From Carpediemonas membranifera BICM (taxonomy: Eukaryota; Protista; Fornicata): a stretch of 64,000 bases of DNA. This document shows positions 1-33,058 of the stretch, one piece after another. The notes under the pieces are model-generated. The model saw only the letters and a list, made by a program, of their open reading frames with translations. It did no database searches and was not told the DNA's origin. Positions within the stretch are counted from its first letter, which is position 1. Every line of letters begins with the position of its first letter. The stretch is from the NCBI GenBank assembly GCA_019828565.1, contig JAHDYR010000005.1, positions 1,741,408 to 1,805,407 of the forward strand, written 5' to 3'. Position numbers and translations under genes: made by a program.

Positions 1-1253
1 AATGGCTCTCGATTATGGATGATTACGGGCTCCCGCATGCCAATCTCATCACTCGTCTGGAAATGCGCATTTTTGGGCACGGAACACCAGCTGCACCAGC
101 TGCTTCCGGACCGGTCTGTGCACCTAGACGAGGGCCCTGTTTACCGTTGAAGGCGCCGAAGAGTGGCCTAGGACCAAGGACGAACTCTATGAGATGGAGG
201 CCAAAAAGCCTCAGAAACAACTCACAAAGTACCATAGAGACGCCTGGACAGTCCAGCACCGCCCATCAACGCCGTCTGACTTCAACTTGGACCGCAATGC
301 GGCCACTCAGGCCCTGAACGACTCCTCCCAGCGCGCTGCCCCGGCGGCTGGAATTCTCCGGCAAGAGGCCGCACTCACCCCAATTGAGCTAGAATCGAAG
401 CCTGTTGGCTCAATATTTGTCCCAATTGCCAGGGCACACCTGGATGTCGCCCCGTTCGAAGAGTGGCCCGAGACTTGCCCCCTGTGTCAGGCCCAGCGCT
501 GCACCTGGCAGCATGCCCTCTCGTGCCCACACACCAAGGGAACCGCCCACACCGAGCGTCACAACCATGTTAGAGACGCTGTGAGCGCCGTGTTGACCGA
601 CGACGACGTTAGAGGTCGACCCATGGCCCGTTGCCAGGCCGAGGTCGCGCTCACCTCTCGTCACCCCCGCTACCAGCAGGCCGATACCGAAGCGCCCAGA
701 CGCAAGGGTGGCCGACCTCATGGTGGCAGGCGAGAGAGACGTGGTCGGGAACCGTGTCCACGAGGAAGTCTATGTCGACTTCGTGGTCAGCCTGCACCCG
801 CGGGAGGCTGAGCTAGAGAAGCTCCGCGAGTACCGCAACTGGCAGGTCACCTTCGTGCCTGCTGCCTGCACGGTTCTGGGCGAGACTGAGTCCCGTCTGA
901 CCGAGTGCTGGGTCGCCCGCCTCTGTGCCGCGATTCGCAGGCCGGCCCTCGTGGGCGCCATCCGTGACCGGGTATTCTGGTCCATCTGGGCGGACAACCA
1001 GACCGTCTGGTCGGACTATGTCTCCCAGTGCAAGGCCCGTTGGGCCGAGCACCACCAATAATCTGCCCTCCCCACAAAATGCCGGAGTCGCGACTCGGCT
1101 GACTCGGCCACTCTAGGCTGCGTCGTCCCCGAGCCCCCCTGCGCCTCCCGCCCCATCGCCGCATCGCACAACAAGCTCCCTGCCCCTGCGCGAGAGTAGT
1201 TGCTCGAAATTCCGCGGAGTCGCGTGTCGTTCGGACAACCTGGGAAAGTAAAT
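1..1253 (+). mobile_element. Unit U0, 3' part only (body type Z, same as U2); CDS ends at 1061
   Basis: Near-identical to 8880-10129; encodes the CCHC knuckle and RLE, ending WAEHHQ*; several single-base indels. Confidence 0.9.
1084..1253 (+). repeat. About 170-bp 3' block shared by all units regardless of body type
   Basis: Starts at the palindrome GAGTCGCGACTC (1085-1096) and ends GGGAAAGTAAAT; recurs almost unchanged before each junction and before the intact tRNA-Glu. Confidence 0.9.
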
Positions 1254-1266
1254 TCGGCCATGGTAT
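1254..1266 (+). repeat. Duplicated tRNA-Glu nt 1-13 (TCGGCCATGGTAT), minimal target-site duplication; also at 5895, 10130, 14522, 19261, 23854, 28498 and 33053
   Basis: Exact match to 37792-37804; the junction copies continue CCAGAGG (element 5' end) whereas the tRNA continues AGCTGG. Confidence 0.92.
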
Positions 1267-4200
1267 CCAGAGGAAAGTTGCTCGATTCGCCGCCGCAAGG
1301 CGACGAATCCTGCCATACATCCGATGAAGGACCTGGTACGTCTATTGACAAGCGATTAGCGCTGTTCGCTGCTCTTCTGCGGTGGATTAACGATTTCCAT
1401 CCATCCAGCTCGAAGAACTCTTGGCCGAAGGATACTGAGGCCTTTATTGAGATCTGCATGAACAAAGAACGTCTATTGAGCCTTATTTCGGATTACAAGC
1501 GTTTCTTCACGGTGAGCAACTTGGTTTGGATAACCAACTACGTTCACGCGGCGACAAATCGCTTCGGCCCCGGCCACAAGGTGAAAGCTTCCCGCCGCGA
1601 CGATCACGTCGCAAATGCTGTCGCCATTCTGCACGCTGCAGCCACTGATCAGGCGTTCACATCAACGCTCACCATCGAACGTGCGAACGAGGCTCTTGAG
1701 CGTATGATCGAGCACGCCATCGACCCAGTGAAAGCGAGAAGGATGAACCTCCTTCAGACTGTCCGAGGCCCTCAGAGGACGACGTCTGTAACCGCCTTGG
1801 TGAAGCGGGTCCAGCATGCGCCCCGCCCAGCCAGCCCACCGAATGCGGGCATCGCCCGCGAGTATGCGAGGGCCGATGCCTTCGCCCGACGCCAGGGTGA
1901 CCGGCCCCCGAGCCCCACCCCCTGCCGATACTGCCCTCACCGACTCCGCTGCCGCCCTAACTGGGCCGCAGCCTGCAGCCACACAGCAGGGAGACCGGCC
2001 CCCGAGCCCCACCCCTGCCGATACTGCCCTCACCGACTCCGCTGTCGCCCCTAACTGGGCCGCAGCCTGCAGCCACACAGCAGGGAGACCGGCCCCCGAG
2101 CCCCACCCCTGCCGATACTGCCCTCACCGACTCCGCTGCCGCCCTAACTGGGCCGCAGCCCGCAGCCGCCCCGCAGGGTGACAGGCCCCCGAGCCCCACC
2201 CCTGCCGATGCTGCCCCCACCGACTCCGCTGCCGCCCTAACTGGGCCGCAGCCCGCTGCCGCCCCGCAGGGTGACAGGCCCCCGAGCCCCACCCCTGCCG
2301 ATGCTGCCCCCACCGACTCCGCTGCCGCCCTAACTGGGCCGCAGCCCGCTGCCGCCCCGCAGGGTGACAGGCCCACGCGCCAGACCCCCGCCCAGGTTGC
2401 CCCCCACCCAGCCAGAGGAGAGGAACATCGACGACACCGCAGTGTCCGAGTTCCTCTCCCTGGCGGGCGTCGAAGGCGGGGAAGGGGAGAGAGCTGAGCC
2501 AGAGACCGGGCACGAAGCCCGTGGTGACTCAGCCAACCCTCCCCTTCGCCCGCCGCCGCAGGCAAGCCAAGGCCCTGAACCACGTACATTTGTGTACACA
2601 GGACCTCCTGGCGCTCTCAACCAGATCACGGAGGCGCACCCTGGGCCAGCATCATCCACGCCTACCCAGGGGTGGCTGAGCCTGCCAAGCTGGATCGACT
2701 CCGGCATAGGTTCACCGCAAACATCCCGACCCACCTGGTCGAGTCTCATTGGGGCTCGGCCGAGCAGGTAAGGTCCACACTCACGACAGCAGTCCGGGTC
2801 GGAGAAGTGTCCGGCGGGCAGAATGGCGTCCACAGGATGTCACGCGAACGCTGGACACAGCTTCTCGAGGGCCTCTTCGCGGACGAGCCGGACAGGCGGC
2901 CACCCTACAGCTTCCCCAAAGGGTTCAGGCAGTTCACGCCGAGGTTTGTGTTCTTCATGAGAGAGGCATGCGGTCTTCCGCCGGACCCTAGTGCTGAGGC
3001 CCCGCCCCATGCCGGGCCCAGCCAGCCCCCACGGAGACCGAGAGCAGCGCTCCTGCCCCTGCCGCCGGCCGACCCTCTCGCGGGCGACCTGCCGATCGAG
3101 CTGTCATATCTGCCTCACCCCGCGGAAGCCGGACGCATCGGCCGGGCGAAGCCCTCACGGAAGGCTGCCGCGGGATTCGTGAACGGGCTGATCCGGCTGC
3201 TCGTGACCCTGGCGAACGCGCCGCAGAACCGGAAGCGGGAGGCGCTAGCCGCCGTCCTTCGGCACGCGCGGACAGTATATCGCCCTGGGAAGAAGGGGAT
3301 CTCCCTCCGCACCCGCTCCCCAGAGCGAGCTGCATACTCGAAGGCCGCCGCCGGGTATTACTCCAGCGCCATGAAGGTCCTGCTCTCTGAGGAGATGACA
3401 CTCACGCCGGGTCAGATCGACCAGAAGCTGGAGGAGATGCAGGCCGCCCCGCTGAGAGATCCCCAGACGCCGGCTCTCACACGCCGCGCCGACGCGCTCA
3501 CGTCCTTTGAGGTCACCTTCGAGGCCGTAGACGAGGCGCTGGGGAAGATGAGAGCGGACTCGGCCCCCGGCCCATCCGGGCTGAGCTTCTTGCATCTGAA
3601 ACTCGCTCATCGACTCCGGAAGGGCCAGTTGGTGCAGGCACTCCTGCCCCTTGTGCGCGACATCATTGCCGGCGAGGAGTACACGGGTATCCTCGCTCAC
3701 GCACGGCTCATCGCACTGCCGAAGGGCGAAGATCGGGTCAGACCCATCGCCATGGGCGAGGCGCTCCGGCGCCTGGCCGCGAAGGTCCTCGCCTCGGCCG
3801 TCTCGTCGCGTCTCCGTAATGACGGCGTCTGCCCTGAGCAGTACGGGCTCGGCGAGAGCTGCGGCCTGGACGTTATGACCGCGAAAATTGCGGAAGCGTA
3901 CGACGAAGGGCTCAAGGTCTGTGCTGTTGACATGACTAACGCCTACGGAACCGTGTCCCGCGCCCACCTCCGTGTGGTGCTCGAGGCGCACGCCCCAGCC
4001 GCCCTCCCCTATTTCTCCACCATGTATGGCGAGGGCAAGCTGCTGACCCCGACCGGGCACGTCATAGCCAGCCGAGAGGGCATCCACCAGGGGGACCCCC
4101 TGTCCCCAGCCCTCTTCACGCTGGCTATGACGCCCTCCTCGGCAGCCTCCGGTCGCAACTTCCCAGTACGACCATCCTCGGCTACCAGGACGACGTGTAC

Positions 4201-5702
4201 GGGCTGCTGCCCCGGCAGGCAGACCAGCGGACGATCGATACATTCTACGCGCGTGTGGAGGCGGCGTGTGGAGCCGTCGGTATGCGGGTGAACCGACTGA
4301 AGTGCCTCGTCCTGGCGAAGACGGGGACACTGGGCCAAAAAAAGCGGACGGGTGCTCGGTATCCCCGTAGGCGACGACGCGGGCGTTGCCAACGCTGTGG
4401 ACGCGGCCTTCTCGCGCATGGAGGACGCGCTCGTGCGGGTGGCCGAGATGACCGAGGCAGTGGGGCCGAAAGCGGCCTCGGTGGCGGTCAATCTGATCAG
4501 GTCTTGCGTTCTTCCGATGCCTTCGGCAATCTTTCGCAACGTGAGCCCAATTGGCCACGAATGCCGCACAAAAAGCCTGGAGCGGAAGCTGAGAGCTGCC
4601 ATCGCACGCATCCTTCAGGTATCCGACGTCACAAAGATACCCGAAGAGCGTCTAGCGCTCGATTTCGCCGACTACGGGCTCCGTATCCCTCTTCCGTCGC
4701 TCATCTGGAAGTGTGCATTTTTGGGCGCAGCCCACCAGCTGCACGCCCTAGGCATCACCCGGGACATGGAGGCGGCGCTGTTCTCTCCAGAAGAGTGCCA
4801 GGAGTGGCCCAAAACCATCCAGGAACTGTTTAGCATCGAGGCTGAAAAGCCGCAGAAGACACTCACTACGATGCTTGCAAAAGCCTGGACGGCCAAGTAC
4901 CGCCCCAAGACACCCGCCGACTTCGGCCTAGACCCCGAGGAGGTCTCCCAGGGCCTCTCTGACTGCAGCTCCCTCGAGGCCCCCGCCGCCGGACTCCTCC
5001 GCAAAGAAGCCGCGCTGAGCCCCCTCGACCTCGAGCAGACCTCCTGCGACAGCGTGTTCGTCCCCGTCACCCGGGCGCACCTCAACATCGCCCCATTCCG
5101 CGAGATGCCGGTCACCTGCCCCCTCTGTGGCCAGCAGGACATCACGTGGCGCCACGCCCTCGGCTGCTCCTACCTGAAGGATGGCGCGACCAACGCACGC
5201 CACGACAGCATCAAGATGGCTGTGCACGATCTCGTGACCCAGGACGACCTCCGCGGGCGCCCCATCCCCCACTGCAAGCCCGAGTTCGATCTGCTCGACA
5301 CCCACCCTAGGTTCCGCGTCACGAGCGCCGACGCCCCCACACACAAGCGGGCCGACCTCAAGGTCTGGGGCGAGCGCGACGTGGTCGGAAACGCGGTACA
5401 CGATGATGTATACGTGGACTTCTACTGCGGTCTTCACCCCCGCGACGCCGAGACCGAGAAGACCCGGGAGTACGCCAACTGGGACGTCACCTTCCTGGTC
5501 GCCGCCACCACCGTCGGCGGCGCCACGGGAGTCCCGCCTGACCGCGGACTGGGCGGTGCAGTTTTGCGACGCCATTGCACGGCCGCACCTGGCGGGAACC
5601 ATGCGCGACACGGCCTTCCTGAAGGCCTGGGAGGGCAACCTCAGCATCTGGAGTGACTATGTCAGCCAGTGCAAGGCCCGCTGGGCCGAGCTCAACCTAT
5701 AA
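1260..5702 (+). CDS. Retrotransposon RT-CCHC-RLE polyprotein (U1), interrupted by single-base indels
   Basis: Track ORFs 1200-2054, 2364-2771, 2672-4291, 4352-5656 and the 3' end of 5403-5702 reconstruct one frame by comparison with U5 and U7. Confidence 0.8.
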
Positions 5703-5894
5703 CCAGGTCCCTGCACAGAAATCTGGAGTCGCGACTCGGCTGACTTGGCCACTCTAGGCTGCGTCGTCCCCGAGCCCCCCTGCGCCTCCCGCCCCATCGC
5801 CGCATCGCATAACGCATCCCCTGCCCCTGCGCGAGAGTAGTTGCTCGAAATTCCGCGGAGTCGCGTGTCGTTCGGACAACCTGGGAAAGTAAAT
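1267..5894 (+). mobile_element. Unit U1: N-module alpha + about 5 linker repeats + body X
   Basis: N-terminus TSIDKRLALFAALLRW; body HRFTANIPTH...WAELNL*. Confidence 0.92.
1892..2358 (+). repeat. 93-bp tandem repeat (31 aa, QGDRPPSPTPADAAPTDSAAALTGPQPAAAP), about 5 copies in U1; 1-6 copies in other units
   Basis: Repeat starts near 1892, 1987, 2081, 2174 and 2267; approximate copy numbers U2 1, U3 2, U4 6, U5 4, U6 5, U7 4, U8 6. Confidence 0.9.
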
Positions 5895-5900
5895 TCGGCC

Positions 5901-8900
5901 ATGGTATCCAGAGGAAAGTTGCTCGATTCGCCGCCGCAAGGCGACGAATCCTGCCATACATCCGATGACGGACCAGGTGACACGAATTACCTGAAACTAG
6001 CGCTGTTCGCTGCGCTCCTGCGCGTAATGGACGAAATTCGTCAGCACTACCCGAAAGGCTCGTGGCCGAAGAACGCTGAGGCCTTCATCGAGGTTTGTAT
6101 GAACAAAGATCGTTTATTGCGCCTTGTGACGGACAACAAACGCTTCTTCACGATCAACAACCTTTCTTTGATCACGGACTACGTTCATGCGGCCACAAAC
6201 CGCTTCGGGCCAGGCCATAAGCCGAAGGCATCCCGCCGTGATGACCACATCGCCAATGCCACTTCACTTCTCCACGCCGCAGCCACCAACCAGGTGTTCA
6301 CTGCTACGATCTCGATTGATCGTGCCAACGAGGCCCTCGAGCGCGTGATACGGGGCAGAAGGACCGATGAGCAGCTCATGAGGGAGCACCCTCGTCCGCT
6401 CCGCCCGTCCGAGATCGCCGCTCGCCGCGCCAAGACCGGGCGTCAGTCATACGCCCAACTGATCAGCCGTGTCGAGGAGGCCCGCCCGGCAAGCCCTGCG
6501 CGAGACCGCACTGCCTTCCTCGAGGCAGAAGCATACGCGTGTCGCGTAGCTGCTGGCCGCGCAGACCGTCAACAGCAGGGTGATAGGCCCCCGAGCCCCA
6601 CCCCTGCCGATGCTGCCCCCACCGACTCCGCTGTCGCCCTAACTGGGCCGCAGTCCGCAGCCGCCCCGCAGGGAGACCGGCCCACGCGCCAGACCCCCGC
6701 CCAGGTTGCCCCCACCCAGCCAGAGGAGAGGAACATCGACGACACCGCAGTGTCCGAGTTCCTCTCCCTGGCGGGCGTCGAAGGCGGGGAAGGGGAGAGA
6801 GCTGAGCCAGAGACCGAGCACGAAGCCCGTGGTGACTCAGCCAACTCCCCCCTTCGCCCGCCGCCGCAGGTTGACCCCGCCCACCGGCTCACAGGGTGGC
6901 TCGACCGCACGACCATCGACGCTGTTCGCCGCAGCTTTGACGCACATGTACCGCGGGAAGACAGAGACATGTGGTCGACCAACGACCAGGTCGTCGCGAC
7001 GCTGACGTCTGTCGACGCCGTCCGCTGGCTCTCCCGGGGGCAAAATGGCCAGAACCGCATGTCCAGAGCACGCTGGACGGCTCTCCTCGAGCAGGTCTTT
7101 GCGGCTCACCCGAGGAACCGGCCTTCGTATGCGTTCCCGCAAGGCCTGAAGTCGTTCGCACCCAGGTTCGTGGCGTTCATGAGGGAAGGGTTGGGTATGC
7201 CAGTCGACCCCGCTCTCCCAGCTGTCCCGCAGCCAAGGACGGCCCAGCCAGCCAGAAGAAGGCTCACTGCTCCCCGCCCGCAGCCGGAGACCATCCTTCC
7301 AGAGCTCCCAGAGGACCTCAAGTTCCTCCCCTCCCCGACGGAGGCCGGCAGGATTGGGAAGTCGAAGCCTTCAAGGAAGGGTGCGGTCTCATTCGTGAAG
7401 GGTCTCATCAACCTGTTGGAGGCCCTGAACGAGGTGCCTGCCCAGCAGAAACGGCGTGGCCTTATTGCCATCATGACCCATGGTCAGACGGTGTACAAGC
7501 CCGCCAAGAAGCAGGTGACACTGCGGACCCGGACCAAGGAGCGCTCGGCCTTCACCAAGGCCTCGGCCGGCTACTACTCCAGTGGCCTGAAGATCCTCCT
7601 GTCTGAGGACATGGACCTCAGCCCGACCGAGGTTGACGAGAAGCTGGTGGAGCTGCAGGCCGAGCCAATGGCAGACCCACGTCTCTTCCACCCACAGCAA
7701 CGGGCGGGTGCGCTGGAGTCATATGAGGTCACCCCGGAGTCTGTGACATGGGCCCTGGACAGGCTCAAAGCAGACTCGGCACCGGGACCCTCGGGCCTGA
7801 GTTTCCTTCACTTGAAGCTGGCCTACCGCCTACGCAAACACAAGTTTGTTGCTGCTGTCACGCCTCTGATCAACGACATCATCAACGGGGAGCCCTACAC
7901 TGAGATCCTGTCGCACTCGAGGCTCGTTGCCCTGCCTAAGGGAGACTCCAAGGTCCGGCCCATTGCAATGGGCGAGAGCCTGAGACGCCTCGCAGGCAAG
8001 GTCCTAGCCCACGATGTCGGGCTGAGGATTATTGGCGATGGTGTGTGCGAGGGGCAGTTCGGACTGGGCGAGAGCTGCGGCCTGGACTGCATGGGTGACA
8101 TTCTGAAGGCAGCGTACGCCGGCGGTGCGCAGCTGTGCGCCGTTGACATGTCCAATGCGTACGGAACCGTCAGTCGGCAGCATCTGTCTGAGGTCGCACA
8201 GGCGTGGGCCCCGGTCTTGCTACCGTACCTGCACACGATGTATGCCGGGGGCAAGATGATCACACCAACAGGCCTTGTCATCCCGTCCCGGGAGGGCATC
8301 CAGCAAGGGGACCCCATATCTCCGCTGCTGTTCACCCTGGCGATGAAGCCGGTCCTGGACCAGATCAGAGGTGAGTTCCAGGAGTGCAGGATGGTCTCCC
8401 TATCAGGACGATGCTTACTTGATCGCGCCAGCGTCCATGCCGGCCTCACGAGTTGATCGGTTCTACGACCGGATGGCTGAGGTTTGTGGCCGCATCGGCA
8501 TGCGCGTGAACACGGCTAAGTGTATGGTGATCAGCGCTGCTGGCTCCCCGGGTGCCATTCAGCGGGTAGTCAACGGTAGAGCCGTTGGAATCCCTGTTGG
8601 TGACGCTCATGGTGAGGCAAGAGCTGTCGATGATGTCTTCTCGGAGATGGAGATGGCGACTGCTCGCGTCGTGGAAATGGTGGAGACTGTAGGGCCTTCT
8701 GCGGCCAGCGTTGCGCTGAATATGATTCGTTCATGCATTCTTGCGATGCCATCCGCAATCTACAGAGCTGTGTCGCCGATTAGGCACGAAAGCAGGACAT
8801 CCCGCTTCGAGCAGATGCTTAGCCGCAGCGTAGAGCACATTCTGCAACTAAGAGATGGTCTGGAAGACAAAACTCGTAGAATGGCTCTCGATTATGGAGA

Positions 8901-9937
8901 TTACGGGCTCCGCATGCCAATCCCATCACTCGTCTGGAAATGCGCATTTTTGGGCACGGAACACCAGCTGCACCAGCTGCTTCCGGACCGGTCTGTGCAC
9001 CTAGACGAGGCCCTGTTTACCGTTGAAGGCGCCGAAGAGTGGCCTAGGACCAAGGACGAACTCTATGAGATGGAGGCCAAAAAGCCTCAGAAACAACTCA
9101 CAAAGTACCATAGAGACGCCTGGACAGTCCAGCACCGCCCATCAACGCCGTCTGACTTCAACTTGGACCGCAATGCGGCCACTCAGGCCCTGAACGACTC
9201 CTCCCAGCGCGCTGCCCCGGCGGCTGGAATTCTCCGGCAAGAGGCCGCACTCACCCCAATTGAGCTAGAATCGAAGCCTGTTGGCTCAATATTTGTCCCA
9301 ATTGCCAGGGCACACCTGGATGTCGCCCCGTTCGAAGAGTGGCCCGAGACTTGCCCCCTGTGTCAGGCCCAGCGCTGCACCTGGCAGCATGCCCTCTCGT
9401 GCCCACACACCAAGGGAACCGCCCACACCGAGCGTCACAACCATGTTAGAGACGCTGTGAGCGCCGTGTTGACCGACGACGACGTTAGAGGTCGACCCAT
9501 GGCCCGTTGCCAGGCCGAGGTCGCGCTCACCTCTCGTCACCCCCGCTACCAGCAGGCCGATACCGAAGCGCCCAGACGCAAGGTGGCCGACCCTCATGGT
9601 GGCAGGCGAGAGAGACGTGGTCGGGAACCGTGTCCACGAGGAAGTCTATGTCGACTTCGTGGTCAGCCTGCACCCGCGGGAGGCTGAGCTAGAGAAGCTC
9701 CGCGAGTACCGCAACTGGCAGGTCACCTTCGTGCCTGCTGCCTGCACGGTTCTGGGCGAGACTGAGTCCCGTCTGACCGAGTGCTGGGTCGCCCGCCTCT
9801 GTGCCGCGATTCGCAGGCCGGCCCTCGTGGGCGCCATCCGTGACCGGGTATTCTGGTCCATCTGGGCGGACAACCAGACCGTCTGGTCGGACTATGTCTC
9901 CCAGTGCAAGGCCCGTTGGGCCGAGCACCACCAATAA
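5901..9937 (+). CDS. Retrotransposon polyprotein (U2), about 1340 aa after correcting two +1 indels (near 8400 and 9591)
   Basis: Frame is open from ATG 5901 through the N-module, linker and RT up to just before YQDD (track ORF 5841-8456), which shows the single-ORF architecture. Confidence 0.85.
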
Positions 9938-10129
9938 TCTGCCCTCCCCACAAAATGCCGGAGTCGCGACTCGGCTGACTCGGCCACTCTAGGCTGCGTC
10001 GTCCCCGAGCCCCCCTGCGCCTCCCGCCCCATCGCCGCATCGCACAACGCATCCCCTGCCCCTGCGCGAGAGTAGTTGCTCGAAATTCCGCGGAGTCGCG
10101 TGTCGTTCGGACAACCTGGGAAAGTAAAT
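5908..10129 (+). mobile_element. Unit U2: N-module beta + 1 linker repeat + body Z
   Basis: N-terminus DTNYLKLALFAALLRV; body VDPAHRLTGWLDR...WAEHHQ*. Confidence 0.92.
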
Positions 10130-10135
10130 TCGGCC

Positions 10136-13100
10136 ATGGTATCCAGAGGAAAGTTGCTCGATTCGCCGCCGCAAGGCGACGAATCCTGCCATACATCCGA
10201 TGAAGGACCAGGTGACACGAATTACCTGAAACTAGCGCTGTTCGCTGCGCTCCTGCGCGTAATGGACGAAATTCGTCAGCACTGCCCGAAAGGCTCGTGG
10301 CCGAAGAACGCTGAGGCCTTCATCGAGGTTTGTATGAACAAAGATCGTTTATTGCGCCTTGTGACGGACAACAAACGCTTCTTCACGATCAACAACCTTT
10401 CTTTGATCACGGACTACGTTCATGCGGCCACAAACCGCTTCGGGCCAGGCCATAAGCCGAAGGCATCCCGCCGTGATGACCACATCGCCAATGCCACTTC
10501 ACTTCTTCACGCCGCAGCCACCAACCAGGTGTTCACTGCTACGATCTCGATTGATCGTGCCAACGAGGCCCTCGAGCGCGTGATACGGGGCAGAAGGACC
10601 GATGAGCAGCTCATGAGGGAGCACCCTCGTCCGCTCCGCCCGTCCGAGATCGCCGCTCGCCGCGCCAAGACCGGGCGTCAGTCATACGCCCAACTGATCA
10701 GCCGTGTCGAGGAGGCCCGCCCGGCAAGCCCTGCGCGAGACCGCACTGCCTTCCTCGAGGCAGAAGCATACGCGTGTCGCGTAGCTGCTGGCCGCGCAGA
10801 CCGTCAACAGCAGGGTGATAGGCCCCCGAGCCCCACCCCTGCCGATGCTGCCCCACCGACTCCGCTGCCGCCCTAACTGGGCCGCAGCCGCCAGCGGGAT
10901 GACCGGTCTACCGACCCCACCCCTGCCCAGGCTGCCCCCACCGACTCCGCTGCCGCCCTAACTGGGCCGCAGCCCGCAACCGCCCCGCAGGGTGACAGGC
11001 CCACGCGCCAGACCCCCGCCCAGGTTGCCCCCACCCAGCCAGAGGAGAGGAACATCGACGACACCGCAGTGTCCGAGTTCCTCTCCCTGGCGGGCGTCGA
11101 AGGCGGGGAAGGGGAGAGAGCTGAGCCAGAGACCAGGCACGAAGCCCGTGGTGACTCAGCCAACCCTCCCCTTCGCCCGCCGCCGCAGGCAAGCCAAGGC
11201 CCTGAACCACGTACATTTGTGTACACAGGCCCTCCTGGCGCTCTTAACCAGATCACGGAGGCGCACCCTGGGCCAGCATCATCCACGCCTACCCAGGGGT
11301 GGCTGAGCCTTGCCAAGCTGGATCGACTCCGGCATAGGTTCACCGCAAACATCCCGACCCACCTGGTCGAGTCTCATTGGGGCTCGGCCGAGCAGGTAAG
11401 GTCCACACTCACGACAGCAGTCCGGGTCGGAGAAGTGTCCGGCGGGCAGAATGGCGTCCACAGGATGTCACGTGAACGCTGGACACAGCTTCTCGAGGGC
11501 CTCTTCGCGGACGAGCCGGACAGGCGGCCACCCTACAGCTTCCCCGAAAGGGTTCCGCGAGTTCACACCAAGGTTGGTCTACTTCATGAGGGAGGCCTGC
11601 GGACTCCGGCAGGACCCCACAACCGGTGGTCCACCGCACACCAGACCCAGTCTGACCCAGCGGAGACCGAGAGCCGCACTCCTCCCCATGCCACCAACTG
11701 ACCCCATCGCAGGCGACTTGCCCCTCGAACTGGCGTTCCTTCCCCATCCAGCTGAAGCCGGCCGTATCGGCCGATCAAAGCCATCGCGAAAGGCGGCAGC
11801 CAGGTTTGTGAACGGGCTGATCCAGCTGCTCGTGGCCCTTGCCAACGCCCCGGAGAGTCGGAAGCGAGAGGCGCTAGCCGCCGTCCTTCGGCACGCGCGG
11901 ACCGTATACCGCCCTGGGAAGAAGGGCGTTTCTCTCCGGGCCCGCTCTCCGGAGCGAGCTGCATACTCGAAGGCCGCCGCAGGGTACTATTCAAGCGCCA
12001 TGAAGGTCCTGCTCTCTGAGGAGATGACACTCACGCCGGGTCAGATCGACCAGAAGCTGGAGGAAATGCAGGCCACCCCACTTCACGATCCCCAGACACC
12101 GGCACTCACACCCCACACCGACGCACTGACGTCCTTTGAGATCACGTTCGAGGCGGTTGACGAAGCCCTAGGAAGGATGAGGGCGGACTCGGCACCGGGC
12201 CCATCCGGGCTGAGCTTCTTGCATCTCAAACTGGCCCACAGACTGCGGAAAGGCAAGCTTGTCCAGGCGCTGCTACCTCTCGTGAGAGATATCATCGCAG
12301 GAGAGGAGTACACAAGCATCCTCGCGCACGCACGGCTCATCGCGCTACCAAAGGGCCAAGATCGCGTCAGACCCATCGCTATGGGCGAGTCTCTCCGACG
12401 CCTTGCCGCGAAGGTCCTTGCCTCAGCCGTCTCGGCCCGCCTCCGGGACGATGGGGTCTGCCCAGAGCAGTATGGGCTGGGTGAGAGCTGCGGCCTGGAC
12501 ATCATGACCAACAAGATCGCCGAGGCCTACGAGTCGGGCCACAAGGTCTGTGCTGTGGACATGTCCAATGCGTATGGCACAGTGTCCCGGGCTCACCTTC
12601 ATGCAGTACTGCAGGCCTATGCCCCAGCCGCACTCCCATACTTCACTACGATGTACAGGAGAGGGCAAGCTGCTTACGCCGACTGGCAAGGTCATTGACA
12701 GCCGCGAGGGCATCCACCAGGGTGACCCGCTCTCGCCCGCACTCTTCACGCTGGCAATGATGCCCATCCTGAAGAGCCTCCGGTCTCAGCTCCCGAGCGC
12801 CACCATTCTCGGGTACCAAGATGACTTGTACGGTCTCTTGCCCGCCCACGCGGACCAACGCTCGATAGAGACGTTCTACGTGCGAGTGGAAGCAGCATGC
12901 AAGGCCGTTGGTATGCGCGTCAACAGGCAGAAGTGCCTCATCCTGACGAAGGCCGGATCACTTGGCAGACGGAGCGGACGCGCGTTGGGAATCCCCGTAG
13001 GAGACGACGCCGGCATCTCCCAGGCAGTGGATGATATCTTCACGCGCATGGAGGAGGCGCTCGAACGCGTCGCTGAAATGACGGAGACCGTGGGGCCAAA

Positions 13101-14331
13101 AGCAGCCGCCGTAGCGATCAACATGATCAGGTCATGCGTTCTACCGATGGCTTCAGCAGTATTTCGCAACGTGAGCCCGATCGGGCACGAATGCCGAACC
13201 AAAAGGCTCGAACACACGCTGAGAACCGTTATCGGCCGCATACTTCAAGAAACGGACGTTTCAAATATCCCAAAAGAGCGCCTTGCACTTGATTATGATG
13301 ACTACGGGCTTCGGATTCCACTTCCCTCTCTCATTTGGCAATGTGCGTTTTTAGGAGCAGCGCACCAGCTGCACGCCCTAGGCATCACAAGGGCCATGGA
13401 GGAGGAGCTATTCGCTCCCAATGGGTGCCAGAGGTGGCCCAAGACCACCCAGGACCTGTTCGACATCGAGGCTGAAAAGCCGCAGAAGACACTCACAACG
13501 ATGTTGGCAGAGACCTGGACGGCCAATTACCGCCCCAAGACACCCCACGACTTCAGTCTAGACCCCGAGGAGGTCTCCCAGGGCCTCACCGACTGCAGCT
13601 CCCTCACCGCACCCGCCGCCAGACTCCTCCGCAAAGAAGCCGCGCTGAGCCCCCTCGACCTCGAGCAGACCTCCTGCGACAGCGTGTTCGTCCCCGTCAC
13701 CCGGGCGCACCTCAACATCGCCCCATTCCGCGAGATGCCGGTCACCTGCCCCCTCTGTGGCCAGCAGGACATCACGTGGCGCCACGCCCTCGGCTGCTCC
13801 TACCTGAAGGATGGCGCGACCAACGCACGCCACGACAGCATCAAGATGGCTGTGCACGATCTCGTGACCCAGGACGACCTACGCGGGCGGCCCATTCCCC
13901 GTTGCCGTCCAGAGGTCGACCTCCGCGACACACACCCACAGTTCCGCGTCACGAGCGCCGCAGCGCCCCACACACAAGCGGGCCGACCTCAAGGTCTGGG
14001 GCGAGCGCGACGTGGTCGGAAACGTCGTCCACGACGACGTCTACGTCGACTTCTACTGCGGGCTGCACCCCCGCGACGCCGAGCTCGAGAAGACCAAGGA
14101 GTACGCCAACTGGGACGTCACCTTCCTGGTCGCCGCCACCACCGTCGGCGGCGCCACGGAGTCCCGCCTGACCGCGGACTGGGCGGTGCAGTTTTGCGAC
14201 GCCATTGCACGGCCGCACCTGGCGGGAACCATGCGCGACCTGGTCTTCCTCAAGACCTGGGAGGGCAACCTCGCGTCTGGAGTGACTATGTCACTCAGTG
14301 CAAGGCCCGCTGGGCCGAGCACCACCCATAA
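10136..14331 (+). CDS. Retrotransposon polyprotein (U3), interrupted by single-base indels
   Basis: Track ORFs 10076-10876, 11069-11701, 11451-12698, 12550-14331 and 14012-14467 carry consecutive RT/RLE motifs. Confidence 0.8.
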
Positions 14332-14521
14332 TCGCCCTCACCAGAAATGCCGGAGTCGCGACTCGGCTGACTCGGCCACTCTAGGCTGCGTCGTCCCCGA
14401 GCCCCCCTGCGCCTCCCGCCCCATCGCCGCATCGCATAACGCATCCCCTGCCCCTGCGCGAGAGTAGTTGCTCGAAATTCCGCGGAGTCGCGTGTCGTTC
14501 GGACAACCTGGGAAAGTAAAT
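10143..14521 (+). mobile_element. Unit U3: N-module beta + about 2 linker repeats + body W (X-related mosaic)
   Basis: Body begins as X, diverges after about 11545 (FREFTPRLVYFMREACGLRQDP) and ends WAEHHP*. Confidence 0.92.
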
Positions 14522-14527
14522 TCGGCC

Positions 14528-17500
14528 ATGGTATCCAGAGGAAAGTTGCTCGATTCGCCGCCGCAAGGCGACGAATCCTGCCATACATCCGATGAAGGAC
14601 CTGGTACGTCTATTGACAAGCGATTAGCGCTGTTCGCTGCTCTTCTGCGGTGGATTAACGATTTCCATCCCTCCAGCTCGAAGAACTCTTGGCCGAAGGA
14701 TACTGAGGCCTTTATTGAGATCTGCATGAACAAAGAACGTCTATTGAGCCTTATTTCGGATTACAAGCGTTTCTTCACGGTGAGCAACTTGGTTTGGATA
14801 ACCAACTACGTTCACGCGGCGACAAATCGCTTCGGCCCCGGCCACAAGGTGAAAGCTTCCCGCCGCGACGATCACGTCGCAAATGCTGTCGCCATTCTGC
14901 ACGCTGCAGCCACTGATCAGGCGTTCACATCAACGCTCACCATCGAACGTGCGAACGAGGCTCTTGAGCGTATGATCGAGCACGCCATCGACCCAGTGAA
15001 AGCGAGAAGGATGAACCTCCTTCAGACTGTCCGAGGCCCTCAGAGGACGACGTCTGTAACCGCCTTGGTGAAGCGGGTCCAGCATGCGCCCCGCCCAGCC
15101 AGCCCACCGAATGCGGGCATCGCCCGCGAGTATGCGAGGGCCGATGCCTTCGCCCGACGCCAGGGTGACCGGCCCCCGAGCCCCACCCCTGCCGATGCTG
15201 CCCTCACCGACTCCGCTGTCGCCCTAACTGGGCCGCAGCCCGCAGCCGCCCCGCAGGGTGACAGGCCCACGCGCCAGATCCCCGCCCAGGTTGCCCCCAC
15301 CGACTCCGCTGCCGCCCTAACTGGGCCGCAGCCCGCAGCCGCCCCGCAGGGTGACAGGCCCCCGAGCCCCACCCCTGCCCAGGCTGCCCCCACCGACTCC
15401 GCTGCCGCCCTAACTGGGCCGCAGCCCGCAGCCGCCCAGCGGGATGACCGGTCTACCGACCCCACCCCTGCCCAGGCTGCCCCCACCGACTCCGCTGCCG
15501 CCCTAACTGGGCCGCAGCCCGCAGCCGCCCAGCGGGATGACCGGTCTACCGACCCCACCCCTGCCCAGGCTGCCCCCACCGACTCCGCTGCCGCCCCAAC
15601 TGGGCCGCAGCCCGCAGCCGCCCCGCAGGGTGACAGGCCCACGCGCCAGATCCCCGCCCAGGTTGCCCCCACCGACTCCGCTGCTCGCCCTAACTGGGCC
15701 GCAGCCCGCAGCCGCCCCGCAGGGTGACAGGCCCACGCGCCAGACCCCCGCCCAGGTTGCCCCCACCCAGCCAGAGGAGAGGAACATCGACGACACCGCA
15801 GTGTCCGAGTTCCTCTCCCTGGCGGGCGTCGAAGGCGGGGAAGGGGAGAGAGCTGAGTCAGAGACCGGGCACGATGCCCGTGGTGACTCAGCCAACCCTC
15901 CCCTTCGCCCGCCGCCGCAGGCAAGCCAAGGCCCTGAACCACGTACATTCGTATACACAGGACCTGACGCTCTGGTTGCCGCTCATCAGCAGGTTGCGCC
16001 TGGGGGGTGGCTAGACCTTGCCACGATTGATGGGATCCGCCGCACATTCGTTGAACATGTCCCCAGAGAGGACCGCAGCGGCATGTGGTCCACTAATGAC
16101 CAAGTCAGATCGACGCTGACGTCAGTCGAGGCCGTCCGCTGGCTCTCCAGGGGGCAGAACGGGCAGAACCGCATGTCCAGAGCACGCTGGACGGCTCTCC
16201 TCGAGCAGGTCTTTGCGGCTCACCCGAGGAACCGGCCGACGTATGCGTTCCCGCAAGGCCTGAAGTCGTTCGCACCCAGGTTCGTGGCATTCATCCGCGA
16301 GGGACTTGGATTGCCACCTGACCCGGCCATCCCCGCGGTTCCAGGACAGTCGTCGAGTCGACCCACTGCCCGTCGTGCGCCGTTGGTCCCGGCTCGGCCC
16401 CAGGCACAGCCGCACGCAACCTCCTCCCAGCAGCTGCCGGAGGAGCTCCGATTCCTGCCCTCGCCGACTGAGGCAGGAAGGATTGGGAAGGCCAAGCCGT
16501 CAAAGAAGGGCGCACTGCCGTTCGTGAAGGGCCTGATCAACCGCTTCGTAGCTCTCAACGAGGCTCCCGCCTCGCGGAAGCGAGCTGCCCTCATTGCTGT
16601 CCTACAGCATCCGCGCACGGTGTACAGGCCCTCAAAGGAGCCGGTCGGGCTCAGAAGCCGGACACCTGAGTTTGCGGCGTATACCAAAGCAGCGGCCGGC
16701 TACTATTCGAGTGCGTTGAAGGTGCTCCTTGCGGAAGACCTCACACTGGCCCCGGCTGAAGTTGACGAGCAGTTGGAGGCGCTGCAGGAGGAGCCGGTGC
16801 TCAACCCGACCCTGTTCCACCCACCCAGGATGCCGGGTGCGCTTGAGTCGTTTGAGCTGACAGAGGAGGTCGTCACGCATGTCCTCGATCGACTGAAGAC
16901 TGACTCGGCACCTGGGCCATCGGGCCTCAGTTTTCTACATCTGAAGCTGGCCTATAGACTGCGGAAAGGCCAGTTCGTCAGGGCAATAACGCCGCTTTTG
17001 CTCGACATCATCAGTGGCGAAAGGTACACTGAGATCCTCTCCCATGCCCGGCTAGTTGCGCTACCGAAGGGGGCGGGCAACGTGCGCCCCATCGCCATGG
17101 GCGAGTGTCTACGCCGCGTGGCCGGGAAGGCTTTGGCCCGCGTGGTTGGCCTGCGCCTTGCCGCGGACGGGGTCTGCTCTGGCCAGTATGGACTGGGCGA
17201 GCCCTGTGGTCTTGACTGTATGGCTGACCTTCTGGCAGAGAGGTATGCAGCAGGCGACCAGGTATGTGCCGTCGACATGACTAACGCATATGGAACGGTG
17301 TCCAGGCAGCACCTCCGGGACGTCGCAGAGGCCTGGGTTCCCGCCCTGCTGCCGTACCTTGAGGTCATGTACCGTCAGGGTCGTCTGATCACCCCTACAG
17401 GACTCGTCATTCCGTCCAGGGAAGGGGGTACAGCAGGGGGATCCCATCTCTCCTGTCCTCTTCTCCCTGGCCATGAAACCTGTGCTAGACCAGCTGCGGT

Positions 17501-19068
17501 CTGAATTCCCGGACTGCGACCTGGTTGCATACCAGGATGATGCATACCTTGTCGCCCCCCGCGACACACCAAGCACACGTATTGATGCCTTCTTTGCTCG
17601 ATGCGCCGCACTGGCGAACGGCGTGGGTATGAAGGTCAACGCGGCCAAGTGTGTTGTCATCTCGAAGTTCGGGGTTTCGGGGAACATCCGGCGCGCTGTG
17701 TGCGGAAAGGCGGTCGGTGTCCCCATTGGGGATGCTGATGGCGAGGCTGCGGTAGTCGATGAAGTGTTCTGTGGCATGGAAGCGGCCATCGAAAGAATCG
17801 TTGCGATGGTGGAAGCAGTTGGTCCTGTTTCGGCCGGTGTTGCCATCAATATGCTGAGATCGTGTGTTTTGGCAATGCCTTCGGCAATCTATCGGTCTGT
17901 CTCTCCAGTTCCCCACCAATCCAGGACAATTCAGCTGGAAAGGAAAATCCTTCGAGCGATTGGCGACATCCTGCAGAAAATGGGCAGATTGCAAGTTCCT
18001 ACGCAGCGTATTGCGCTTGATTACGATGATTTCGGTCTTCGTATGCCTTTGCCATCGCTCGTGTGGAAGTGTGCATTTTTGGGCACAACACACCAACTGC
18101 ACACACTACGCCCCAACAGGACCGTCCCTCACCTTGACGAGTCGCTTTTCAAGCTCGATGGCAGCGCTGTATGGCCTGAAAGTGTCGAGGCTCTCTATGA
18201 GATCGAGGCCATGAAGCCTCAGAAGAAGCTAACCAAATTCCATAGAGATGCATGGGTGCTTGAGTTCCGCCCCAATCAGCCTGCTGACTTCGAGTTATGC
18301 CCAGATGCCGCCGTTCAGGCTCTACCGGAGTCAGCTGGCCGCCCCGCCCCCGCTGCCGGAGCACTCCGCAAGGAGGCCTCCCTCACGCCCTTGGAGCTCG
18401 ATCCGGCTCCACTGGGGTCCCTCTTTGTTCCCATTGTGCGGGCGCACCTCGACACGGCCCCATTCGAGGAGCTGCCTGAGGTCTGCCCGCTGTGCAACGC
18501 GCAAGCCATCACGTGGAAGCACGCCCTCTCGTGCCCCAACCAGACCGGAGGTGCCGACGATGCCCGCCATGACCACATTCGGGACGTTGTACAGGCCGTT
18601 GTCAGTGACGATGACATATCTGGCCGTCCAATGGCTGACGTGAAGCCCGAGCGCTGGCTCACCCGGGCCCACCCCAGGTTCCGGCAGGTGTCTGCCAGAG
18701 CGCCCACCCGCAAGAGGGCCGACCTCAAGGTCTCTGGTGAGCGTGACGTGGTTGGCAACGTGGTCCATGACGACGTCTATGTCGATTTTTACTGTGGAGT
18801 CAACCCGCGCGCGGCTGAGCTGGAGAAGGCCAGGGAGTACCAGAACTGGGCTATTACATTTATCCCAGCCGCCACCACCGTCCTGGGTGAGACTGAGTCC
18901 CGCATCACCGAGTGCTGGGCCGTGAAGCTCTGTGAGGCGATCGCCCGCCCCCACCTGGTCCCCAGGGTCAAGCACCGCACCTTCCTCTCGGTCTGGGCAG
19001 ACAACATCCGCGTCTGGTCGGACTATGTCTCCCAGTGCAAGGCCCGTTGGGCCGAGCACCACCAATAA
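14528..19068 (+). CDS. Retrotransposon polyprotein (U4), two single-base indels
   Basis: Track ORFs 14468-15727, 15537-17504 and 17473-19068. Confidence 0.82.
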
Positions 19069-19260
19069 TCTGCCCTCCCCACAAAATGCCGGAGTCGCGA
19101 CTCGGCTGACTCGGCCACTCTAGGCTGCGTCGTCCCCGAGCCCCCCTGCGCCTCCCGCCCCATCGCCGCATCGCATAACGCATCCCCTGCCCCTGCGCGA
19201 GAGTAGTTGCTCGAAATTCCGCGGAGTCGCGTGTCGTTCGGACAACCTGGGAAAGTAAAT
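14535..19260 (+). mobile_element. Unit U4: N-module alpha + about 6 linker repeats + body Y
   Basis: Body DALVAAHQQVAPGGWLDL...WAEHHQ*; near-identical to U6 and U8. Confidence 0.92.
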
Positions 19261-19266
19261 TCGGCC

Positions 19267-22200
19267 ATGGTATCCAGAGGAAAGTTGCTCGATTCGCCGC
19301 CGCAAGGCGACGAATCCTGCCATACATCCGATGACGGACCAGGTGACACGAATTACCAGAAACTAGCGCTGTTCGCTGCGCTCCTGCGCGTAATGGACGA
19401 AATTCGTCAGCACTGCCCGAAAGGCTCGTGGCCGAAGAACGCTGAGGCCTTCATCGAGGTTTGTATGAACAAAGATCGTTTATTGCGCCTTGTGACGGAC
19501 AACAAACGCTTCTTCACGATCAACAACCTTTCTTTGATCACGGACTACGTTCATGCGGCCACAAACCGCTTCGGGCCAGGCCATAAGCCGAAGGCATCCC
19601 GCCGTGATGACCACATCGCCAATGCCACTTCACTTCTTCACGCCGCAGCCACCAACCAGGTGTTCACTGCTACGATCTCGATTGATCGTGCCAACGAGGC
19701 CCTCGAGCGCGTGATACGGGGCAGAAGGACCGATGAGCAGCTCATGAGGGAGCACCCTCGTCCGCTCCGCCCGTCCGAGATCGCCGCTCGCCGCGCCAAG
19801 ACCGGGCGTCAGTCATACGCCCAACTGATCAGCCGTGTCGAGGAGGCCCGCCCGGCAAGCCCTGCGCGAGACCGCACTGCCTTCCTCGAGGCAGAAGCAT
19901 ACGCGTGTCGCGTAGCTGCTGGCCGCGCAGACCGTCAACAGCAGGGTGATAGGCCCCCGAGCCCCACCCCTGCCGATGCTGCCCCCCACCGACTCCGCTG
20001 CCGCCCTAACTGGGCCGCAGCCCGCAGCCGCCCCGCAGGGTGACAGGCCCCACGAGCCCCACCCCTGCCCAGTGCTGCCCCCCACCGACTCCGCTGTCGC
20101 CCTAACTGGGCCGCAGCCCGCAGCCGCCCAGCAGGATGACCGGCCCCCGAGCCCCACCCCTGCCCCAGGCTGCCCCCACCGACTCCGCTGCCGCCCCTAA
20201 CTGGGCCGCAGCCCGCAGCCGCCCCGCAGGGTGACCGGCCCCCGAGCCCCACCCCTGCCGATGCTGCCCCCCACCGACTCCGCTGCCGCCCTAACTGGGC
20301 CGCAGCCCGCAACCGCCCCGCAGGGTGACAGGCCCACGCGCCAGACCCCCGCCCAGGTTGCCCCCACCCAGCCAGAGGAGAGGAACATCGACGACACCGC
20401 AGTGTCCGAGTTCCTCTCCCTGGCGGGCGTCGAAGACGGGGAAGGGGAGAGAGCTGAGTCAGAGACCGGGCACGAAGCCCGTGGTGACTCAGCCAACCCT
20501 CCCCTTCGCCCGCCGCCGCAGGCAAGCCAAGGCCCTGAACCACGTACATTTGTGTACACAGGACCTCCTGGCGCTCTTAACCAGATCACGGAGGCGCACC
20601 CTGGGCCAGCATCATCCACGCCTACCCAGGGGTGGCTGAGCCTTGCCAAGCTGGATCGACTCCGGCATAGGTTCACCGCAAACATCCCGACCCACCTGGT
20701 CGAGTCTCATTGGGGCTCGGCCGAGCAGGTAAGGTCCACACTCACGACAGCAGTCCGGGTCGGAGAAGTGTCCGGCGGGCAGAATGGCGTCCACAGGATG
20801 TCACGTGAACGCTGGACACAGCTTCTCGAGGGCCTCTTCGCGGACGAGCCGGACAGGCGGCCACCCTACAGCTTCCCCAAAGGGTTCAGGCAGTTCACGC
20901 CGAGGTTTGTGTTCTTCATGAGAGAGGCATGCGGTCTTCCGCCGGACCCTAGTGCTGAGGCCCCGCCCCATGCCGGGCCCAGCCAGCCCCCACGGAGACC
21001 GAGAGCAGCGCTCCTGCCCCTGCCGCCGGCCGACCCTCTCGCGGGCGACCTGCCGATCGAGCTGTCATATCTGCCTCACCCCGCGGAAGCCGGACGCATC
21101 GGCCGGGCGAAGCCCTCACGGAAGGCTGCCGCGGGATTCGTGAACGGGCTGATCCGGCTGCTCGTGACCCTGGCGAACGCGCCGCAGAACCGGAAGCGGG
21201 AGGCGCTAGCCGCCGTCCTTCGGCACGCGCGGACAGTATATCGCCCTGGGAAGAAGGGGATCTCCCTCCGCACCCGCTCCCCAGAGCGAGCTGCATACTC
21301 GAAGGCCGCCGCCGGGTATTACTCCAGCGCCATGAAGGTCCTGCTCTCTGAGGAGATGACACTCACGCCGGGTCAGATCGACCAGAAGCTGGAGGAGATG
21401 CAGGCCGCCCCGCTGAGAGATCCCCAGACGCCGGCTCTCACACGCCGCGCCGACGCGCTCACGTCCTTTGAGGTCACCTTCGAGGCCGTAGACGAGGCGC
21501 TGGGGAAGATGAGAGCGGACTCGGCCCCCGGCCCATCCGGGCTGAGCTTCTTGCATCTGAAACTCGCTCATCGACTCCGGAAGGGCCAGTTGGTGCAGGC
21601 ACTCCTGCCCCTTGTGCGCGACATCATTGCCGGCGAGGAGTACACGGGTATCCTCGCTCACGCACGGCTCATCGCACTGCCGAAGGGCGAAGATCGGGTC
21701 AGACCCATCGCCATGGGCGAGGCGCTCCGGCGCCTGGCCGCGAAGGTCCTCGCCTCGGCCGTCTCGTCGCGTCTCCGTAATGACGGCGTCTGCCCTGAGC
21801 AGTACGGGCTCGGCGAGAGCTGCGGCCTGGACGTTATGACCGCGAAAATTGCGGAAGCGTACGACGAAGGGCTCAAGGTCTGTGCTGTTGACATGACTAA
21901 CGCCTACGGAACCGTGTCCCGCGCCCACCTCCGTGTGGTGCTCGAGGCGCACGCCCCAGCCGCCCTCCCCTATTTCTCCACCATGTATGGCGAGGGCAAG
22001 CTGCTGACCCCGACCGGGCACGTCATAGCCAGCCGAGAGGGCATCCACCAGGGGGACCCCCTGTCCCCAGCCCTCTTCACGCTGGCTATGACGCCCCTCC
22101 TCGGCAGCCTCCGGTCGCAACTTCCCAGTACGACCATCCTCGGCTACCAGGACGACGTGTACGGGCTGCTGCCCCGGCAGGCAGACCAGCGGACGATCGA

Positions 22201-23661
22201 TACATTCTACGCGCGTGTGGAGGCGGCGTGTGGAGCCGTCGGTATGCGGGTGAACCGACTGAAGTGCCTCGTCCTGGCGAAGACGGGGACACTGGGCCAA
22301 AAAAGCGGACGGGTGCTCGGTATCCCCGTAGGCGACGACGCGGGCGTTGCCAACGCTGTGGACGCGGCCTTCTCGCGCATGGAGGACGCGCTCGTGCGGG
22401 TGGCCGAGATGACCGAGGCAGTGGGGCCGAAAGCGGCCTCGGTGGCGGTCAATCTGATCAGGTCTTGCGTTCTTCCGATGCCTTCGGCAATCTTTCGCAA
22501 CGTGAGCCCGATTGGCCACGAATGCCGCACAAAAAGCCTGGAGCGGAAGCTGAGAGCTGCCATCGCACGCATCCTTCAGGTATCCGACGTCACAAAGATA
22601 CCCGAAGAGCGTCTAGCGCTCGATTTCGCCGACTACGGGCTCCGTATCCCTCTTCCGTCGCTCATCTGGAAGTGTGCATTTTTGGGCGCAGCCCACCAGC
22701 TGCACGCCCTAGGCATCACCCGGGACATGGAGGCGGCGCTGTTCTCTCCAGAAGAGTGCCAGGAGTGGCCCAAAACCATCCAGGAACTGTTTAGCATCGA
22801 GGCTGAAAAGCCGCAGAAGACACTCACTACGATGCTTGCAAAAGCCTGGACGGCCAAGTACCGCCCCAAGACACCCGCCGACTTCGGCCTAGACCCCGAG
22901 GAGGTCTCCCAGGGCCTCTCTGACTGCAGCTCCCTCGAGGCCCCCGCCGCCGGACTCCTCCGCAAAGAAGCCGCGCTGAGCCCCCTCGACCTCGAGCAGA
23001 CCTCCTGCGACAGCGTGTTCGTCCCCGTCACCCGGGCGCACCTCAACATCGCCCCATTCCGCGAGATGCCGGTCACCTGCCCCCTCTGTGGCCAGCAGGA
23101 CATCACGTGGCGCCACGCCCTCGGCTGCTCCTACCTGAAGGATGGCGCGACCAACGCACGCCACGACAGCATCAAGATGGCTGTGCACGATCTCGTGACC
23201 CAGGACGACCTCCGCGGGCGCCCCATCCCCACTGCAAGCCCGAGTTCGATCTGCTCGACACCCACCCTAGGTTCCGCGTCACGAGCGCCGACGCCCCCAC
23301 ACACAAGCGGGCTGACCTCAAGGTCTGGGGCGAGCGCGACGTGGTCGGAAACGTCGTCCACGACGACGTCTACGTCGACTTCTACTGCGGTCTTCACCCC
23401 CGCGACGCCGAGACCGAGAAGACCCGGGAGTACGCCAACTGGGACGTCACCTTCCTGGTCGCCGCCACCACCGTCGGCGGCGCCACGGAGTCCCGCCTGA
23501 CCGCGGACTGGGCGGTGCAGTTTTGCGACGCCATTGCACGGCCGCACCTGGCGGGAACCATGCGCGACACGGCCTTCCTGAAGGCCTGGGAGGGCAACCT
23601 CAGCATCTGGAGTGACTATGTCAGCCAGTGCAAGGCCCGCTGGGCCGAGCTCAACCTATAA
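19267..23661 (+). CDS. Retrotransposon polyprotein (U5), indels in C-runs
   Basis: Track ORF 20231-23500 (1089 aa) holds the complete RT with YQDD and the CCHC knuckle; the RLE is in 23107-23661. Confidence 0.85.
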
Positions 23662-23853
23662 CCAGGTCCCTGCACAGAAATCTGGAGTCGCGACTCGGCT
23701 GACTTGGCCACTCTAGGCTGCGTCGTCCCCGAGCCCCCCTGCGCCTCCCGCCCCATCGCCGCATCGCATAACGCATCCCCTGCCCCTGCGCGAGAGTAGT
23801 TGCTCGAAATTCCGCGGAGTCGCGTGTCGTTCGGACAACCTGGGAAAGTAAAT
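19274..23853 (+). mobile_element. Unit U5: N-module beta + about 4 linker repeats + body X
   Basis: Beta N-terminus joined to the same X body as U1 and U7. Confidence 0.92.
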
Positions 23854-23859
23854 TCGGCC

Positions 23860-28306: not shown

Positions 28307-28497
28307 TCTGCCCTCCCCACAAAATGCCGGAGTCGCGACTCGGCTGACTCGGCCACTCTAGGCTGCGTCGTCCCCGAGCCCCCTGCGCCTCCCGCCCCAT
28401 CGCCGCATCGCATAACGCATCCCCTGCCCCTGCGCGAGAGTAGTTGCTCGAAATTCCGCGGAGTCGCGTGTCGTTCGGACAACCTGGGAAAGTAAAT
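23867..28497 (+). mobile_element. Unit U6: N-module alpha + about 5 linker repeats + body Y
   Basis: Same body as U4 and U8. Confidence 0.92.
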
Positions 28498-28503
28498 TCG
28501 GCC

Positions 28504-32860: not shown

Positions 32861-33052
32861 CCAGGTCCCTGCACAGAAATCTGGAGTCGCGACTCGGCTG
32901 ACTTGGCCACTCTAGGCTGCGTCGTCCCCGAGCCCCCCTGCGCCTCCCGCCCCATCGCCGCATCGCATAACGCATCCCCTGCCCCTGCGCGAGAGTAGTT
33001 GCTCGAAATTCCGCGGAGTCGCGTGTCGTTCGGACAACCTGGGAAAGTAAAT
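28511..33052 (+). mobile_element. Unit U7: N-module alpha + about 4 linker repeats + body X
   Basis: Same body as U1 and U5. Confidence 0.92.
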
Positions 33053-33058
33053 TCGGCC

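Follow-up and report, generated by a model that had tools for sequence, protein, structure and literature searches.

The CRE clade of retrotransposons (SLACS, CZAR, and CRE1/2 of trypanosomatids) combines a reverse transcriptase (RT) and RLE with internal repeats, target-site duplications, and a fixed insertion point close to the beginning of a small-RNA gene present in many copies (PMC12278014), and in these features it resembles the element described here from the fornicate Carpediemonas membranifera. Unlike members of that clade, however, the Carpediemonas element targets tRNA-Glu instead of SL RNA, has no poly-A tail and no visible N-terminal zinc finger, and forms head-to-tail arrays; one of its copies is named 'SLACS protein' by NCBI. 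For R2, which inserts into 28S rDNA, RNA carrying upstream target sequence anneals to the target and yields uniform 5′ junctions, as seen in the present element, whereas RNA without this sequence yields variable junctions; where target sequence is carried, changes in it are propagated (PMC3774820). R2 has a ribozyme of the HDV type and can dispense with an initial Met; here, by contrast, no ribozyme was found, and the piece of target preceding the ORF contains an in-frame ATG. tRNA genes are likewise the targets of the RLE families NeSL-1_TV (tRNA-Pro), LIN15_SM (tRNA-Arg), and LIN25_SM (tRNA-Glu), in the description of which the term 'start codon' occurs nowhere (PMC4640811), and the start of translation in site-specific R2-group elements is still called unknown (PMC13580325). 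Searches of mainly open-access literature brought up no account of a start codon supplied by the target. A retroelement takes its start codon from the gene it has entered in the case of mitochondrial group II introns with in-frame maturases; there, however, the recipient is a protein-coding exon and the arrangement depends on splicing, whereas the donor here is a non-coding tRNA gene. HeT-A of Drosophila is telomeric, lacks its own RT, and has its own start codon. In its tandem arrays, transcription initiates at the 3′ end of the preceding copy (PMC1636488), which serves as a model for entry of the ATG into mRNA in the present arrays, where the putative promoter would lie in the 3′ UTR.

The window, a stretch of 64,000 nucleotides, lies on contig 6 of an assembly that comprises 69 contigs and 24.24 Mb, to which all genome-wide counts refer; this genome was assembled from Nanopore and Illumina reads, and repeats were masked prior to gene prediction (PMC8516963). 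Its array (Table 1) is a mosaic of two N-terminal modules, alpha (units U1, 4, 6, 7, and 8) and beta (U2, 3, and 5), which are ~71% identical at the DNA level and combined in U1-U8 with at least three RT modules (~58-68% identical). Top PDB matches of the RT are R2 proteins (E 4e-17), and the motifs CPLC...H...C and RADLKV...D are conserved across alignment A1, although the CCHC/nuclease region was identified by motif, without a profile match. The N-terminal part has no Pfam match (zinc finger or Myb), which, along with the tRNA rather than 28S target and the lack of a ribozyme match, sets the element apart from the R2 clade. Hallmarks of TPRT are present, namely a fixed 3′ end (...GTAAAT), 5′ truncations (loci L034 and L042), and target duplication (14 bp in L042). 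In one copy the ORF is unbroken over 1557 codons, and in the others examined it is frameshifted. The Carpediemonas families form a 100/100 clade with two outside sequences, P0002 and P0036, in the RT tree, and the element works like one of the CRE/R2 group, the tree having been built without reference CRE sequences. It is read here as a tRNA-targeting RLE retrotransposon, R2/CRE-like and probably without a 5′ UTR of its own; the explanation developed below, in which the tRNA-derived ATG is its start codon, is held with slightly better than even confidence. Directly behind a tRNA-Leu, the window also holds a DIRS-like element (38028-41800; tyrosine recombinase 38530-41247, RT on the minus strand), whose end sequence also follows tRNA-Glu on contig C26 (L021).

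Table 1. Coordinates of the array, its unit features, and its tRNA target within the window
Feature	Position	Strand	Basis or remark
Head-to-tail array	1..37791	+	One partial and eight whole units, 4235-4739 bp each
13-nt duplication of tRNA-Glu(CTC) nt 1-13	1254..1266	+	Unit junction; likewise at 5895, 10130, 14522, 19261, 23854, 28498, and 33053
Probable start ATG (tRNA nt 7-9), in the reading frame of the element ORF	1260..1262	+	Junction reading frames
Element head, with hairpin and GCAA tetraloop at 1284-1309	1267..1325	+	Identical in alpha and beta at every site, including ~15 synonymous sites
Out-of-frame ATG at element nt 58, opening a 9-11 codon ORF	1324..1326	+	First AUG if the RNA lacks the tRNA piece
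LALFAALLR, codons 33-41	1356..1382	+	4 synonymous, 0 non-synonymous alpha/beta changes
Met67, first internal Met common to alpha and beta	1458..1460	+	Sequence comparison
Met43, beta only	6027	+	Sequence comparison
RVT_1 reverse transcriptase domain, last unit	35596..36192	+	RVT_1 E 3e-14
CCHC knuckle and PD-(D/E)xK-like motif, last unit, 3′ of RT	near 37015-37320	+	Motif in translation
3′ UTR, last unit (192 nt)	37600..37791	+	Terminal AAAT resembles natural tRNA upstream flank
tRNA-Glu(CTC), intact target gene at array end	37792..37864	+	Kept whole by duplication

The 13-mer TCGGCCATGGTAT occurs exactly at all eight unit junctions and a ninth time at 37792, where it forms the 5′ end of tRNA-Glu(CTC), so that the ATG within it corresponds to tRNA nt 7-9; with up to two mismatches allowed, 10 matches were obtained versus 1.17 expected. 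Each internal junction is preceded by a block like the 3′ UTR of the last unit. Genome-wide, a head-only search placed the 13-mer, by coordinates, directly before every full-length element head (52/52). Matches to the 13-mer on C13 and C16 were dismissed as chance. Junction 33053 is spanned with zero differences by a contig from an independent 2016 run, indicating that it is no assembly artefact. All three intact tRNA-Glu(CTC) genes of the genome, as well as one broken copy, have an element upstream. In tRNA-Glu(TTC) genes, nt 7-9 read GTG, and no element adjoins them. The broken, fourth copy (C54:267848; L024/L031) lacks nt 1-23, in a loss that also took the 3′ end of the last unit.

Apart from those on C43 and C52, most array starts are uninformative, two lying at N runs and several apparently having been cut by other insertions, and the insertion reaction was deduced from three sites. 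On C43, a unique flank ending in ...CCAAAT is followed by the 13-mer, to which a full-length head is joined. The start on C52 (L034) has another flank with the same ending, which leads into the 13-mer, then three bases, the first of which matches tRNA nt 14, and a 5′-truncated unit. These two flanks have a 19-nt motif in common ~50 nt upstream (L034:3929-3947; L038), and they consequently look like natural tRNA-Glu flanks. The third site, on C1 (L042), is an off-target truncated copy with a clean 14-bp duplication, with TCG..CATG at the same register and with the terminal AAAT brought along; the ATG at nt 7-9 is present in this site itself. Together, these junctions point to a bottom-strand nick at tRNA +1 and a top-strand nick near +13/+14, such that the ATG falls within the duplicated target. 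Nicking at these positions restores the tRNA gene and leaves its nt 1-13 before the ORF. Three further observations concern these and other arrays: the first C43 unit changes from alpha to beta inside LALFAALLR, and in the same locus (L038) an opposite-strand ORF seems to begin ~115 nt upstream of the natural tRNA-Glu site; two arrays (C52:9946 and 20979) are directed apart across ~9 kb of other sequence; and C15 holds a 478-bp internally deleted unit with both ends (L046:1105-1583), a possible non-autonomous derivative.

At each of the eight junctions (8/8), the ATG opens the translation MVSRGKLLDSPPQ..., as the initial annotation had claimed in proposing that the start codon is supplied by the tRNA target in frame with the element ORF. 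Its accompanying statement that no earlier in-frame ATG precedes LALFAALLR also proved correct, the frame being closed by a stop 21 codons upstream with no ATG intervening. The coding constraint it had read from synonymous changes in LALFAALLR extends over codons 23-66, where alpha and beta differ with pS 0.56 and pN 0.27 (p=0.004), evidence of purifying selection that was controlled by shifted and reverse frames, which give far smaller or zero excess. Within this interval, selection is supported for codons 43-66 (p=0.007) and for LALFAALLR (p=0.007, for a segment picked post hoc), while codons 23-42 alone show no significant purifying selection (p=0.22). The first Met common to both modules is codon 67, Met43 being found in beta only. 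With selection acting ahead of codon 67, initiation is very likely to lie upstream of it. A start at internal Met 43 or 67, with the upstream frame a relic, is accordingly the least probable of the alternatives and is given very little credence: residues 1-25 look unstructured in a low-confidence model (N-terminal pLDDT 46, no Atlas match), and NCBI gene models for the family begin internally, although the underlying prediction used masked repeats (PMC8516963); however, codons 33-41 and 43-66 are under purifying selection, Met43 is absent from alpha, and an out-of-frame AUG comes earlier than either Met.

With no ATG in the final 170 nt of the element 3′ UTR, and with the first AUG internal to the element out of frame, the tRNA-derived ATG is the natural start under scanning. 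In Giardia, a related fornicate, mRNA leaders measure 0-12 nt and a first-AUG rule applies (PMC4949329). Among 45 ORF starts sampled mechanically, noise was too high for a Kozak-like context to be defined. The balance of the evidence tips toward the target-derived ATG of the tRNA as the start codon.

Codons 1-22 carry no coding signal, being nucleotide-identical between alpha and beta in spite of ~15 synonymous sites and a pS near 0.56 elsewhere; such identity is ascribed to nucleotide-level constraint or exchange, and the invariant head is probably a cis-acting RNA element. This head folds (z about -2), and near-cognate codons lie in frame within the element (AAG at codon 6, TTG at codon 7). 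Initiation could therefore be non-AUG or structure-driven within the element, at TTG codon 7 or by IRES-like use of the hairpin head, as in R2, the tRNA ATG being incidental. This alternative is unlikely but carries more weight than any other considered here: R2 translation is described as independent of a Met (PMC13580325), the head is both nucleotide-invariant and folded, TTG7 is common to the modules, and the one intact 1557-codon copy discussed below would still be readable from codon 6 or 7. On the other side, the head gave no meaningful Rfam match (three chance matches fell far below the gathering score), neither a custom HDV descriptor nor a scan for the hammerhead core, both used without positive-control validation, produced a hit, and non-AUG initiation leaves unexplained the in-frame target ATG of a second lineage, described below.

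For initiation at the tRNA-derived ATG, the mRNA would start upstream of it, in the 3′ UTR of the preceding unit or in the tRNA flank, and the ATG would be reached by ordinary scanning as the first AUG. The same RNA would act as template, its tRNA-like 5′ end annealing to the target and thereby keeping the junction constant and in frame, in line with what has been proposed for R2. Presence of the tRNA piece on the RNA is suggested by the duplication, which is invariant at 13 nt in full-length junctions but comprises 14 nt or untemplated bases in the two 5′-truncated insertions, the pattern known from R2; recombination within arrays may also account for part of this uniformity. The ATG would thus descend from the target and be matched to it anew whenever an insertion takes place, yet be carried along with the RNA. 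Pol III transcription from the tRNA-like head was rejected by reasoning, only part of box A being duplicated and the ORF containing runs of five T. An 11-mer that the 3′ UTR has in common with sequence upstream of a deoxyhypusine-synthase-like gene was rejected as a general promoter motif, having only 3 matches outside elements, and the search for this pattern revealed no promoter for element transcription. A tandem repeat of 123/165-bp units (C7:339429-342446) was met in a pattern search.

The initial annotation had further proposed that only copies inserted on target gain a start codon, coupling expression to targeting. This proposal loses its footing if the ATG is translated: it must then be on the RNA, which is also the template, and full-length cDNA would carry the ATG anywhere, as the R2 precedent indicates (PMC3774820), so that the inference of coupling is weak. 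No full-length off-target copy was found, and the one off-target site keeps an ATG at the same register. Strict coupling could be rescued if the reverse-transcribed RNA lacked the tRNA piece, being trimmed or incompletely copied, so that on-target copies alone acquired a start. No head lacking the 13-mer was encountered, and off-target and truncated copies are without an ORF start, both of which fit such a scheme. However, it requires two RNA forms or a cleavage step, neither of which was found; a +14 nick with simple joining would place the ATG out of frame (n=2 truncated insertions); and the ATG of the off-target copy belongs to that site itself. Strict coupling is hence regarded as improbable, more so than initiation at a non-AUG codon.

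A counter-case to the tRNA-derived start comes from an extra G at element nt 6-8, found in 3/32 distinct heads compared, which puts the ATG out of frame. One of these heads belongs to C54:259384, the only copy with an unbroken 1557-codon frame to the stop, and another lies at C56:41426. The frameshifts found elsewhere in the ORF of the other copies examined are expected of long-read errors in repeats, and the extra G may likewise be an error; in the three heads, it may be either a sequencing error or a real variant.

The only close relatives outside the assembly are P0002, from a Logan contig of SRR31444219 (L047), and P0036, from GCA_002919055.1 (L048), which are 43% identical, their first ~190 residues being unalignable. 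Around the ATG at L047:159 and L048:8058, 23/24 nt are identical, the best-conserved stretch of >20 nt between both contigs. The reverse complement of these 24 nt was read as a tRNA 3′ end, and the adjoining T-arm (22 nt) was predicted and then searched: it matched four places in the Carpediemonas genome with one mismatch and zero in the control, and a sequence predicted for the tRNA 5′ end was present at a distance of 82 nt in all four loci, at which no element junction is indicated. A 12-nt stretch closing with ATGG is thus complementary to the 3′-terminal 12 nt of a class II tRNA, which is presumably Ser-like, given its G discriminator, and the ATG corresponds to CAT of the T stem read in antisense. 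In P0002, no further Met occurs until residue 254, beyond the start of the conserved region, while L048 has an additional in-frame ATG 19 codons upstream, in presumed flank. These distant relatives thus seem, from their 5′ ends, to begin their ORFs in another tRNA and on the opposite strand. The chance of an in-frame ATG in a 12-14 nt duplication is 0.056-0.067, and P0002 and P0036 count as one independent event (~0.06 chance), the contigs showing the 5′ junction alone, without a 3′ junction or host tRNA; an in-frame target ATG outside Carpediemonas was accordingly found in one lineage, by 5′ junction only. Ten bases with AATAAA upstream of the antisense tRNA piece are common to L047 (141-150) and L048 (before 8050) and may be either tRNA trailer or an element-borne end; in L048, a DIRS-like element with Dam precedes the junction. 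Besides PPCM01001310, 80 metagenome loci held only distant relatives; a scan of 60 of them for tRNAs yielded none, and inspection by eye showed no start resembling a tRNA.

Sibling families within Carpediemonas are also placed near tRNA genes. By coordinates, one lies 1449-1453 nt upstream of four equal-score tRNAs in the same orientation, as compared to 1492 for the window family, and others are antisense, just beyond tRNA 3′ ends. Sibling arrays precede tRNAs at C6:11625, C8:223792, C26:99624, and C63:891380, antisense arrays are located at C39:29299, C68:11455, C3:492376, and C44:85914, and sibling elements also occupy C39:755-795 kb. It is conceivable, if doubtful, that a clade of Carpediemonas-type RLE elements repeatedly chose tRNA sites, on either strand, that give an in-frame ATG, only in-register copies being translated; if true, this would amount to a built-in link between targeting and expression across the clade.

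Targeting of tRNA-Glu by RLE elements was already known. A start codon probably arising from the target duplication has no precedent in the literature searched, and its apparent occurrence in two distant outside relatives is new. Elements of this group probably begin translation at an ordinary AUG that a non-coding target gene has lent them, and they do so in at least two lineages that use different tRNAs and strands. A tRNA-derived start gives the protein a definite, testable N-terminus, and for RNA-templated gene insertion the short target of 13 bp and its uniform junctions are of interest. Such a start may also restrict the target sites open to these elements.
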